Positions 14,820-17,778 of a DNA stretch of 64,000 bases are shown piece by piece. A model generated the notes under the pieces. That model was given only the letters and a program-made list of their open reading frames with translations. It made no database searches and had not been told where the DNA came from. Positions within the stretch are counted from its first letter, which is position 1. Each line of letters starts with the position of its first letter. Location: the NCBI GenBank assembly GCA_038496445.1, contig JALMLS010000149.1:235363-299362 (forward strand), written 5' to 3'. This stretch comes from Trichosphaerium sp. ATCC 40318. Lineage: Eukaryota; Protista; Tubulinea. The translations under genes were made by a program, and so were the position numbers.

Positions 14820-15380
14820 AGCGAAATAATCGCATTTTTTCTTACGCTTACATAAGCGTTAAACGGGCAAAATAATACATTGAAGCCTTCAATAAACTAA
14901 AATACAAGTTTTGGTTATGAAGAAAAAAATGAACACGTTGTTATGAAAAATGTGAGTTTTCGTGTTTTTTTCTTACTATGCTCTCGTTTTTAGAGATAAA
15001 GAGGCATTTACATTAAATTATCTGCGCGACAAAGAGACGTTCTTAAAAAAAGCATTTTGTGAGTATGAAAATTGGTCGGAAAAAAACAAGTAAATGTCAA
15101 TAAATTTCTCACATTTTCGTAGTTTGGTAAAATATTTACTTCCCCTTTCCTCTTCTCCCTCGACCTTCCCCTTCAACGTTGTGTCCTCTACCACCAACTT
15201 TTTAAACAATACACACAAGTAATAAAAGCTCGAATTACGCAGCGGGTAAGAAAATAAAAAGAAAAGTGCCCACACGGCCCTATACGCTTTTTATTTAGAA
15301 CGAAATTCAATTTTATTATTTCCTTTCGCTTTTTTAAATGAATTTATTTATATAGACGTTGTCCTGCGTTTATAGTGCAA

Positions 15381-17265
15381 ATGACGGAATCAGTCGGCTT
15401 TAATAGAGTACTGGGTGAGCTTTCAATGGGCAAAAGGCCAATTCAACTTGCAACAGTTGTAGAATCGCCAGCAAAGCGTAGGCGCGTATCAAAATACCCA
15501 AAAGGTGGAGGATTTAAAAAAACAAACACTACTCCTTCGAAGAAGTCTGAAAATGAGGTACGAACACAAAAAAACTAAATTTGAAGCTACGGAACAAATA
15601 ATAGCGAGTAACGATTAAAATTTCTGTTGTTTTTTTTTCCAAATAGCGCCAACAGAATTCGAGACCTTTTTTCTTGCCTCACCCTCACTAAATCACTGCC
15701 TAGATCCAAAATCAACCAATGACCAATGTACCTCTATCTCCTGGGCAACACCTAACAGCTATGTCTGTACGTAGAAAGATATTAACCACATATTGTTAAA
15801 AACGAAACCACAACGCTATTTTCTCGCTTCGTAAACAAACTAACGAGTTCCCTAGAAGGACATTGATCCATCTACTATTTTCTTGTCTTTACCAAACAAT
15901 TATGCTCAATTGGGCGAAATACAAGAAGTGAAAGGTGCTAATATGCTTAACGACAAGCTTATGCTTCACGTTAAGTTTACAGGTAGTGAGCGACTTTAAA
16001 TATTACCTACCATTGCTCTAACGCGTACCTAGAAGCTGATGATTGGTGCTACGTCCCAGCCGAGTTTGCAAACAATCGGGCTCCCCAAGCCGTCATAAAG
16101 TTCTACCAAAGCCGACTGTGCTCTCCAAGCACAAGCGCTATTTTTACAGCGCCACCCGTCATGGCAACCGCAGCTTCGCCTTTGATTACCGTTGTACAGC
16201 AGCCACCAGCAAAGGCTGTTTACCAACGTCTGCTGAAGCCATTTCCAGCTGTTGCATTAGGTACGTGAACACTTTCAAGTAAAAGAAACTGCTTTACGGG
16301 TTCCAGTTTTTCGGTTTTTTTTCTCCTTTTACTTTATTCCTAAATGTCGTTTTTAGCTGGCATACCAGATAGATCCGAACAATTCTACGTTGAAGCCACT
16401 TTGTTACATAGTGGAACGAAGGCAGAATTAGACTTCTTGGTAGGTGGTAAAACATTAAACATTAATCCCGACTACCCAACCGGTACGCCACTTTTTTTGT
16501 GAACGTTAAAAAAATAGGAACCAACCCGTTTTTCTTTTGTAACCTGACCCTATTTTGTAGTCTTCAAAAAGCTGAAAATAACTACAACCTCTCAGCGCCA
16601 AGGGACGTTATTCCGTTTATGCTTTAAACTCAAGCGTTACGAAAATGAGCAGCTTGTAGATGTACCAGGTAACTACGCGCATTTCAATAATATTTTTTTT
16701 ATCCCTTCTTTGCCCTTCTAACTTTATAACTGTAGGCGGTACTATTACTACTGTGCCAATTGAAGTGTTTTCTCATACTACATACTTGAAGAAAGAGAGT
16801 AAGTTTCGATGACGCGTTTGTTCGATGTTTTACTTATTTCCCTCTGTAGAAACAGTTACGCATGTTTGCCCTAGCATTACAAGAATCATTCCGGATAATG
16901 GTACAAAGAATTTTTGCGAAGACTTTCCCCTTTTTTCTTTGCTTTTCTGTTCTTGTTACTAACTCATGCTCAAGGTCCTCTTGCTGGTGGTAATACGGTT
17001 GCTGTGCTTGGTACAGCTCTTGGTAGTGGGTCAGTGAGAGAACTGTGGTTTGGCTCTAAGAAAGTACGCTTTTAGGAAACTCGCGTTACCCGACCTGTTT
17101 ATTTATTGATTGTTTTTCAAGGTGTCTGTACAACTCCATGATGTAAGTACGCTCCTATGTACAGTGCCAAAAGGAATGGCAAAAGGAGAAATAGTGGCTG
17201 TGCGCTTGCACGATCCCAGAGAAGACTACGCCTCAGAAGGTGCTCTCTCATATCATTACTGTTAA
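15381..17265 (+). CDS. CudA/STAT-like transcription factor with N-terminal chromoshadow domain and C-terminal IPT/TIG domain
   Basis: CSD-like EVKGANMLNDKLMLHVKFTEADDWCYVPAEFANNRAPQAVIKFYQSRL. CudA-like QQPPAKAVYQRLLKPFP...FKKLKITTTSQRQGTLFRLCF...PIEVFSH. IPT-like PSITRIIPDNGPLAGGNTVAVLG...TLLCTVP. Confidence 0.85.
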
Positions 17266-17384
17266 AATTTATGTTTTGTGTTTCAATGCGTTAATAAAAT
17301 GTCCAAAAAAACAAAATGTCTTTGAGTGGTACAATGGTATTTTTCTTGTTTACTTGGGTGTCTCATACAAATATATGGGCAGCC

Positions 17385-17778
17385 TTATTTGTTTGCTGGA
17401 GGTTGTGCATCACGCAAAGATGTCATTACGTTTTTAACTTGGTGGAATTCTTCTTCTAGCGCTTTGTTTAGTGCTTCTTTGGTGAGTCTTCCAATTTCCT
17501 GGGGTTGTTCGTGTGCTAGCTCTGGGTCTACGATAATATCATCACAAATTGTAGTAAATTCTATACGAATGGTATTAGTAGGTAGCTGGAGCGTAGGGCA
17601 CGTACGTGACGACTTTGCTAGTTTGACAATAACCTTTCCGCCTAAACTCATGGTTAATTTTGCATTATAATGCGTCCATACAGTTAGATTTGCCAACGCA
17701 TTTGATTTGGCTGACTTTGTTTTGCATTTGGCTCATTTGAGGAGCAAACATCTTTTGTGCGAAATTGGCGAAGTTCAT
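17385..17778 (-). CDS. YbaB/EbfC-family nucleoid-associated protein homolog (2 introns)
   Basis: The spliced product AQKMFAPQMSQMQNKVSQIKCVGKSNCGKVIVKL...DIIVDPELAHEQPQEIGRLTKEALNKAL aligns by eye to the YbaB pattern (QQMQEKM...EVTGESGAGLVKV...IDPSLL..D.EMLEDLVAAAFNDA). Confidence 0.7.

Follow-up and report, generated by a model that had tools for sequence, protein, structure and literature searches.

In HP1 proteins (CBX1, CBX3, and CBX5), the chromoshadow domain (CSD) is C-terminal; HP1 paralogues heterodimerize through their CSDs, and the classical ligand of the domain is the PxVxL motif. In the Rel homology region of NF-kB, NFAT, and TonEBP, an N-terminal Ig-like DNA-binding domain (DBD) directly precedes an IPT/TIG domain, and the TIG contributes to dimerization in Rel, NFAT5, and EBF. 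Here, we describe a gene of the marine amoebozoan Trichosphaerium sp. ATCC 40318 in which a CSD is joined to a module of this second kind. Its coding sequence occupies positions 15381 to 17265 (+ strand) of a 64,000-nucleotide (nt) stretch of contig JALMLS010000149.1 (assembly GCA_038496445.1, positions 235,363 to 299,362 of the forward strand; hereafter, the window), and its product of 391 amino acids (aa), which we call P0001, consists of a disordered basic N terminus, an HP1-type CSD, a short linker, a beta-sandwich DNA-binding-type domain (for brevity, the DBD), and an IPT/TIG domain. The component domains are all of known kinds; their combination is what appears to be new, and no paper was found that describes a fusion of a CSD with a DNA-binding domain, or the family to which the DBD and TIG belong, in the literature on chromoshadow and velvet domains in Amoebozoa and on DG1062 in Dictyostelium. 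With a probability of roughly 0.55, we read the protein as a nuclear, sequence-specific DNA-binding factor that uses its CSD mainly as a homodimerization module.

Identity of the chromoshadow domain and its fusion in one reading frame

The original prediction, made from the DNA letters alone, placed a peptide resembling the HP1 chromoshadow consensus in exons at ~15910 to 16120, without a chromodomain and in frame with a CudA-like and an IPT domain. The peptide is present exactly as quoted: EVKGANMLNDKLMLHVKFT closes exon 3, the split codon contributes an E, and ADDWCYVPAEFANNRAPQAVIKFYQSRL opens exon 4, together making up residues 103 to 151 of the protein, with the CSD starting at ~15913. 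In the HMMER comparison with Pfam that had been proposed alongside the prediction, the protein passes the thresholds for both Chromo_shadow (PF01393; residues 110 to 151, E value of 2.4e-9, 37.5 bits versus a cut-off of 22.4) and TIG (PF01833; residues 305 to 390, ~16870 to 17259, E value of 1.5e-8, 34.9 bits versus a cut-off of 20.9), and the TIG match covers profile positions 1 to 84 of 84. The absence of a chromodomain was likewise borne out: the Pfam scan of P0001 returned no Chromo (PF00385) match at an E value of ≤1, and the N-terminal 95 residues are modeled as disordered.

The domain is a genuine, HP1-type CSD. Compared with all PDB sequences, residues 90 to 165 match 16 chains, every one of them a CSD of CBX1, CBX3, CBX5, or Drosophila HP1, the best being CBX1 (E value of 2.5e-6, 60 residues without a gap). 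Exon 4, which alone scored in single-exon Pfam scans (the other exons are too short), carries the last 28 CSD residues and by itself matches Chromo_shadow (E value of 5e-7, 30.1 bits versus the cut-off of 22.4), as well as CBX1/CBX3/HP1 CSD chains in a PDB sequence search. An AlphaFold2 model has the expected beta-beta-beta-alpha arrangement (strands at residues 102 to 111, 114 to 121, and 127 to 131 and a helix at residues 141 to 150) with a predicted local distance difference test (pLDDT) score of ~80. The ESM Atlas model of the CSD reaches a TM score of 0.78 to HP1/CBX5 CSD clusters, and the ten best CSD matches by Atlas language-model features are all Chromo_shadow or related. A 414-aa relative of environmental origin (P0002) also matches Chromo_shadow (E value of 3.2e-13, 49.9 bits); because this protein aligns to the CSD of full-length CBX5 (39.5 bits) and not to its chromodomain (4.9 bits), the domain is a shadow domain rather than a chromodomain.

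P0001 thus resembles HP1 and CBX1, -3, and -5 in profile and pairwise matches across the whole 60-residue domain, in fold, and in a helix of the form ...VI.FY..RL, but it differs from them in everything that surrounds the CSD. It has neither a chromodomain nor an HP1-type hinge; its CSD lies N-terminal to a DNA-binding module; and the domain runs into a linker to the DBD, whereas that of HP1 is followed by an acidic C-terminal tail.

Exon 4 is one continuous frame that holds the rest of the CSD begun in exon 3 (to ~16118), a linker of 20 residues, and the first strands of the DBD (from ~16173), including the family motif VVQQPPAKAVYQRLLKPFPAVAL. Because this single exon reads from the CSD into the DBD, the fusion is independent of splicing. 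The splice between exons 3 and 4, which joins the two CSD halves, is present in all four of the public runs (from four different studies) whose spliced contigs were mapped. The part of the prediction that put the CSD in frame with a DNA-binding and an IPT domain therefore stands, since spliced contigs show one mRNA encoding the CSD, a beta-sandwich DBD, and a TIG; the CudA label given to the middle domain does not, as discussed below.

Upstream of the CSD, residues 1 to 94, a stretch rich in Lys, Arg, Ser, Thr, and Pro, are modeled as disordered (with pLDDT values of <50 in exon 1). Exon 1 includes a KRRR stretch resembling a nuclear localization signal (NLS) (KRRRVSKYPKGGGFKK, ~15474 to 15521), and the composition of the region suggests that the N terminus might serve in nuclear import.

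Dimer helix and partner groove

Aligned without gaps, helix alpha-2 reads AVIKFYQSRL in P0001 and VVISFYEERL in CBX1, and is conserved. We take the Ile, Tyr, and Leu of this helix in HP1beta (VISFYEERL) to be hydrophobic dimer-interface residues. The CSDs of P0001 and P0002 are ~50% identical, and the HP1 dimer helix has retained its Ile, Phe, Tyr, Arg, and Leu. After the helix, at what is presumably W170 of HP1beta and W174 of HP1alpha, HP1 reads ...RLTW, P0001 reads ...RLCS (Ser), and P0002 reads ...RILF (Phe); the aromatic residue is lost in P0001 and kept in P0002. W170 and W174 are reportedly required for the binding of PxVxL partners, and this Trp is said not to be needed for dimerization.

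These residues bear on an alternative close to the role first proposed for the protein, in which the CSD pairs with an amoeba HP1 or with PxVxL-type chromatin partners and brings about sequence-directed silencing without prior H3K9 methylation. The HP1-type character of the CSD and its conserved dimer-helix residues would suit such recruitment, as would the Phe with which P0002 fills the HP1 Trp position, and heterodimerization with HP1 through the helix could be compatible with a missing Trp. In the Trichosphaerium protein, however, that position is a Ser (...SRLCS), and HP1-like PxVxL binding is doubtful for this reason; with the helix residues kept and the Trp replaced by Ser, plain dimerization is at least as likely as HP1 recruitment. 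Moreover, the CSD stands in for the N-terminal domain of its family (see below), which is explained more simply by plain dimerization. We regard HP1 recruitment as unlikely.

A PxVxL-like sequence also occurs inside the DBD: the family strand KPFP[AST]V[MA]L fits the motif (in the forms PAVAL, PTVLL, and PSVML) at residues 194 to 198 of P0001 (~16245 to 16259) and in the same column of its relatives. The resemblance is probably a coincidence because, in the model, the sequence forms a buried-looking beta strand of a folded domain.

Domain replacement among relatives

A word search followed by a family profile recovered ~80 relatives of P0001. Among these are Acanthamoeba castellanii XP_004337905, Dictyostelium discoideum XP_002649168 (UniProt C7G006, 771 aa), and proteins of Tieghemostelium, Planoprotostelium (PRP79773), Vermamoeba, and Stereomyxa, as well as one Balamuthia protein; most, if named, are called “IPT/TIG domain-containing protein” or “hypothetical protein.” Nearly all full-length relatives begin with a conserved, helix-rich N-terminal domain of ~230 aa that has no Pfam match. 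Among the ~80 relatives, PF01393 was found only in P0001 and P0002, where it occupies the place of this helical domain (alignment A1 and profile searches). The N-terminal domain of the family has been replaced by a CSD in the Trichosphaerium gene and in one environmental relative. Where the helical domain is present (P0006 to P0045, residues ~1 to 230), it displays the motifs ...LQLLHLxNNxIPPG..., ...TPLHxERQQLLQLEP..., and ...LIELLKLP....

P0002 is encoded by an uninterrupted open reading frame (ORF) on two JGI environmental contigs (L001 and L002) and is 40% identical to P0001 overall. In a tree of the DBD and TIG from 40 proteins, P0001 and P0002 group together, separate from the 38 others, with SH-aLRT support of 97 for their clade. 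The positions conserved in the family are retained to different extents in the two domains: P0001 keeps 54 of 79 in the DBD and 13 of 29 in the TIG, and the corresponding counts for P0002 are 60 and 20. A metagenome scan for CSD fusions returned, among the matches listed, three loci, all of them CSD-only and likely to be ordinary HP1-type genes; the contigs of P0002 itself were not among these matches. On L001 (JGI Ga0265459_10003020), the P0002 gene is intronless and is preceded by two more ORFs on the same strand, one with a BTB_2 domain, and the upstream ORF on L002 differs from that on L001. The two contigs could be transcripts of environmental origin or could be chimeric assemblies.

Family of the DNA-binding-type domain

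By sequence similarity, the DBD and TIG of P0001 form a module that belongs to a mainly amoebozoan family, to whose members P0001 is matched at E values of 1e-30 to 1e-61. The relatives share a core of ~130 residues (with the motifs QPPxKTVYQRILKPFP, FKKLKILSTSQQQGTLFRLKF, and PIEVFSHTQYL) followed by the TIG; P0001 has the corresponding family motifs QPPxKxVYQRxLKPFP, FKKLKIxxTSQxQGTLFRL, and PIEVFSHTxYL, and it keeps all 34 of the positions that were invariant in the first family alignment.

The DBD core of 50 members gave no Pfam match at an E value of ≤10, including to RHD, Velvet, STAT_bind, and Runt, in a copy of Pfam that does not contain PF28397, and a family-profile (A4) search of the PDB matched no chain, velvet chains included. 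Two relatives, P0078 and P0081, carry a precomputed match to PF28397 (DG1062_N, Pfam 38.1), and the DBD of P0001 is matched to that of P0081 at an E value of 2e-26. In an Atlas feature search with the DBD, DG1062_N clusters came first (score of 0.89, 183 shared features). The family therefore probably corresponds to DG1062_N plus TIG, an assignment that is indirect because the PF28397 model was not part of the Pfam copy searched. Atlas neighbors bearing DG1062_N are most common in Oomycota and Haptophyta, for which reason the domain probably extends beyond Amoebozoa.

Some members depart from the usual architecture. P0074 and P0078 have the same DNA-binding core at the N terminus of proteins of 800 to 900 aa, with a C-terminal WWE domain (E value of ~1e-13) and no recognizable TIG. 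Some database relatives, from Planoprotostelium (P0027) and Balamuthia (P0035, P0086, and P0087), are fused to unrelated modules, with a CGI-121 domain in one case and the name “DNA repair protein rad10 domain-containing” in the other; they have the appearance of merged gene models, not of real architectures. The Dictyostelium transcription-factor census has the family under no name, and it lists RHR/RHD, COE/EBF, and CSL as absent (PMC6873476).

Fold of the DNA-binding-type domain

A model of the DBD alone, built from an alignment of 50 sequences (pLDDT of 88, pTM of 0.81), was compared with known structures by VIA-align. The best match was the velvet domain of VosA (Z of 13.0, root mean square deviation of 2.6 over 116 residues, 21% identity), followed by the N-terminal Rel domain of NF-kB p52 (residues 35 to 233; Z of 12.5), the velvet domain of VeA (12.3), p65 (11.9), TonEBP (10.6), Runt (10.4), Dictyostelium STAT (10.2), the Ndt80-like domain of MYRF (10.0), STAT1 (9.1), and EBF1 (8.1). 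DNA-binding domains of transcription factors account for 14 of the 15 best fold matches, the other being a complex of p65 and a bacterial protease. Foldseek with the DBD alone placed the velvet domains of VosA, VelB, and VeA first (E value of 2e-5, TMq of ~0.7), then STAT DBDs, Runt, and CP2; an Atlas structure search with the DBD likewise placed velvet first. With the whole-protein model, the best Foldseek matches were RelA, NFAT1, p52, and EBF1, across both domains. From these fold matches, the middle domain is modeled as an Ig-fold, transcription-factor-type DBD (of the velvet/Rel/Runt/STAT fold class) preceding an IPT/TIG, as is also the case in the Rel homology region and EBF.

The remark in the original prediction that the pairing of a DBD with an IPT domain recalls Rel/NF-kB is upheld by the whole-model matches to RelA, NFAT1, and EBF1 and by the similarity of the DBD to p52. 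The likeness to the Rel homology region is one of fold and layout: P0001 has no Pfam RHD match even at an E value of 10, lacks the RxxRYxCEG recognition loop, and shows 14 to 17% identity in structural alignments. Fungal velvet domains (VosA, VelB, and VeA) provide the best single-domain structural match, but P0001 has no Pfam Velvet (PF11754) match, and velvet proteins lack a following IPT/TIG and dimerize through the velvet domain itself. STATs, which are built of a coiled coil, a DBD, a linker, and an SH2 domain, resemble P0001 only in the fold of the DBD, at Z of 9 to 10; no STAT_alpha, STAT_bind, or SH2 match to Pfam exists in P0001.

The same comparisons bear on a further alternative, that the middle domain is a protein-interaction module of the Ig-like type, which would make the protein a chromatin or scaffold adaptor and not a transcription factor. 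Ig-like beta sandwiches are common, generic Ig-like matches (glycosidase, pilus-chaperone, and complement domains) begin to fill the list below a Z of ~9, and the Pfam and PDB searches connected the domain to no proven DNA-binding family at the sequence level. The best matches, however, at Z of 10 to 13, lie above the generic Ig folds, and almost all of them are transcription-factor DNA-binding domains; the order of DBD and then IPT is that of Rel, NFAT, and EBF; the motifs KxVYQRxLKP (N-terminal) and FKKLK have conserved basic residues; and the N terminus is NLS-like. The N-terminal motif may resemble that of Rel and velvet domains. An adaptor that does not bind DNA is, on this evidence, highly improbable.

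Relation to CudA-like factors

CudA-like factors (cudA, spaA, and cdl1-3) are an Amoebozoa-only family (PMC8808424, PMC5923282), and it was to this family that the middle domain had originally been likened. The hallmark motifs of the P0001 family argue otherwise: none of VFSHT, GTLFRL, YQRILKP, and EVFSH occurs in the CudA-like alignments published by Kin et al. 2022, whether full or trimmed, which include members from Acanthamoeba, Entamoeba, and Physarum (PMC8808424). The two groups have in common their occurrence in amoebozoans and a beta-rich core, reported to be STAT-like in CudA; they differ in what follows the core, which is a helical region without a TIG in CudA-like factors and a TIG in the P0001 family. 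On visual comparison, the two groups have four short collinear blocks, with ...LVYDSES..., ...ELRIKVLSSQxEDMLFRxKV... (in a shorter form, ...IKVLSSQxxxxLFRxKV...), and ...PIRVVSKP... in CudA corresponding to ...LLRSDSE..., ...FKKLKILSTSQQQGTLFRLKF... (in the shorter form, ...LKILSTSQQQGTLFRLKF...), and ...PIEVFSHT... in the P0001 family. Because of these collinear blocks, a distant relation to CudA is plausible, and such a relation would agree with reports of a STAT-like fold in CudA. At best, “CudA-like” is a superfamily-level guess, not a family assignment.

Proposed mode of action

If P0001 is a homodimerizing DNA-binding factor, its CSD would pair with a second copy through the conserved alpha-2 helix (VIKFYQSRL) and so would hold two DBDs together on dyad-type sites, much as the IPT does in Rel and NFAT5 or the velvet domain in VosA and VelB. 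The groove of the CSD dimer could, in addition, dock a partner protein. The CSD would take over the role of the family's N-terminal domain, perhaps relieving the TIG, and the decay of the TIG in P0001 (13 of 29 conserved positions kept, versus 54 of 79 in the DBD) is therefore consistent with a dimerizing role that has shifted to the CSD.

Several points weigh against this proposal. Dimerization of this particular CSD is predicted from its conserved helix, and DNA binding is suggested by fold class and conservation, the DBD having no sequence match to the Pfam models searched (a set without PF28397) or to PDB chains. That one dimerizer was replaced by another is conjecture. The architecture is carried by only two sequences, of which P0001 is the most divergent member of the family, with an end branch of 2.54 versus a median of 0.26; since this branch is so long, its placement in the tree rests partly on the shared CSD. 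Part of the divergence could stem from relaxed constraint and not from a functional shift.

Taken further, relaxed constraint would make the CSD a passenger, a decaying relic of exon shuffling in a protein that works through its DBD and TIG alone, as the very long branch and degraded TIG of the Trichosphaerium lineage and the existence of only two known carriers might suggest. Against this, both carriers still score above the Pfam threshold, their CSDs are ~50% identical in proteins that are 40% identical overall, the residues of the structural core are retained, and transcripts of the intact gene are present in four independent data sets. We give the passenger explanation little credence and continue to prefer a CSD that dimerizes the factor.

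The boldest interpretation is that the protein nucleates heterochromatin at chosen sequences without prior H3K9 methylation, its CSD either pairing with HP1 or forming a homodimer to which partners of the HP1 pathway dock, and that the DBD and TIG are, in addition, truly homologous to the Rel homology region, a module whose origin would then predate the split between Amoebozoa and animals/fungi; this combination we consider very unlikely.

Gene structure, expression, and neighboring features

The window is eukaryotic in character, with a G+C content of ~37 to 39% and short introns. An initial GT..AG gene model was derived from three-frame translation, after which the spliced contigs were mapped onto positions 15200 to 17400. 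The coding sequence comprises ten exons (1,176 nt, 391 codons), with an ATG at 15381 and a stop codon at 17263 to 17265; all splice sites are GT..AG, each junction is covered by spliced contigs from the four runs, and a single contig (X4 record 6, 1,297 nt) spans the entire coding sequence. An exhaustive protein search with exon 4 returned P0001, 100% identical to the query, from the MMETSP0405 transcriptome of the same strain (taxid 498012). Translated in frame, all ten exons recur in P0001 as exact substrings in the same order, each split codon contributing one residue, and a variant of the protein (I311V; P0005) is an uninterrupted ORF on a cDNA contig of 1,368 nt (L006). The gene is real, intact, and expressed.

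All features of the transcript lie on the + strand. An intron in the 5′ untranslated region (UTR) occupies 15246 to 15355 (GT at 15246 to 15247, AG at 15354 to 15355; joint 15244 to 15355, cut +1, in contigs of three runs). Coding exon 1 (15381 to 15557) encodes residues 1 to 59, and exon 2 (15704 to 15766) encodes residues 60 to 80, its joints (15555 to 15702, cut +2, and 15766 to 15856) being present in four of four runs. Exon 3 (15856 to 15982; residues 81 to 123, residue 123 coming from a split codon) holds the N-terminal half of the CSD, and exon 4 (16033 to 16260; residues 123 to 199) holds its C-terminal half, the linker, and the start of the DBD. Exons 5 to 8 (16357 to 16482, 16561 to 16668, 16736 to 16798, and 16850 to 16900) contain the rest of the DBD (residues ~170 to 300, ending at ~16857) and the start of the TIG, which continues through exons 9 and 10 (16975 to 17063 and 17122 to 17265, including the stop). 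Each exon agrees with both the contigs and P0001. The 3′ UTR (17266 to 17300) includes an AATAAA at 17293 to 17298, with transcript contigs ending at 17286 to 17300 and adaptor sequence beginning at 17300 in X2.

Exon 2, whose 21 residues (IQNQPMTNVPLSPGQHLTAMS) lie within the disordered N-terminal region, is evident only through the spliced contigs. The coding introns are all 50 to 146 nt in length with GTA-type donors, and none is U12-like; six in a row are in phase 1 (within 15983 to 17121), and the remainder are in phase 0. Many viral genes have been reported in Trichosphaerium (PMC10521059), and an origin from a giant virus was considered for this gene and rejected because of its ten host-type GT..AG introns (nine coding and one in the 5′ UTR) and the amoebozoan relatives of its DBD and TIG.

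Downstream, an ORF of 103 aa on the − strand (17388 to 17696) has no Pfam match, and its 3′ end overlaps transcript contigs at 17329 to 17400. From 17858 onward, the + strand carries a gene with a weak Glyco_transf_4 match that resembles PIG-A (the GPI GlcNAc transferase).

Implications

Studies of the CSD have almost always dealt with it as one half of HP1, the C-terminal one. A natural fusion in which the CSD alone is joined to a predicted sequence-specific DNA-binding module can show what the domain does by itself, be it as a portable dimerizer or as a dock for partners. If contact with HP1 were true, the protein would represent a simple, genetically encoded way of placing heterochromatin by DNA sequence. 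Beyond Trichosphaerium, the family of DBD and TIG proteins found in Dictyostelium, Acanthamoeba, Vermamoeba, and others may be an overlooked family of transcription factors, and it may bear on the origin of the Rel/NFAT and velvet regulators.

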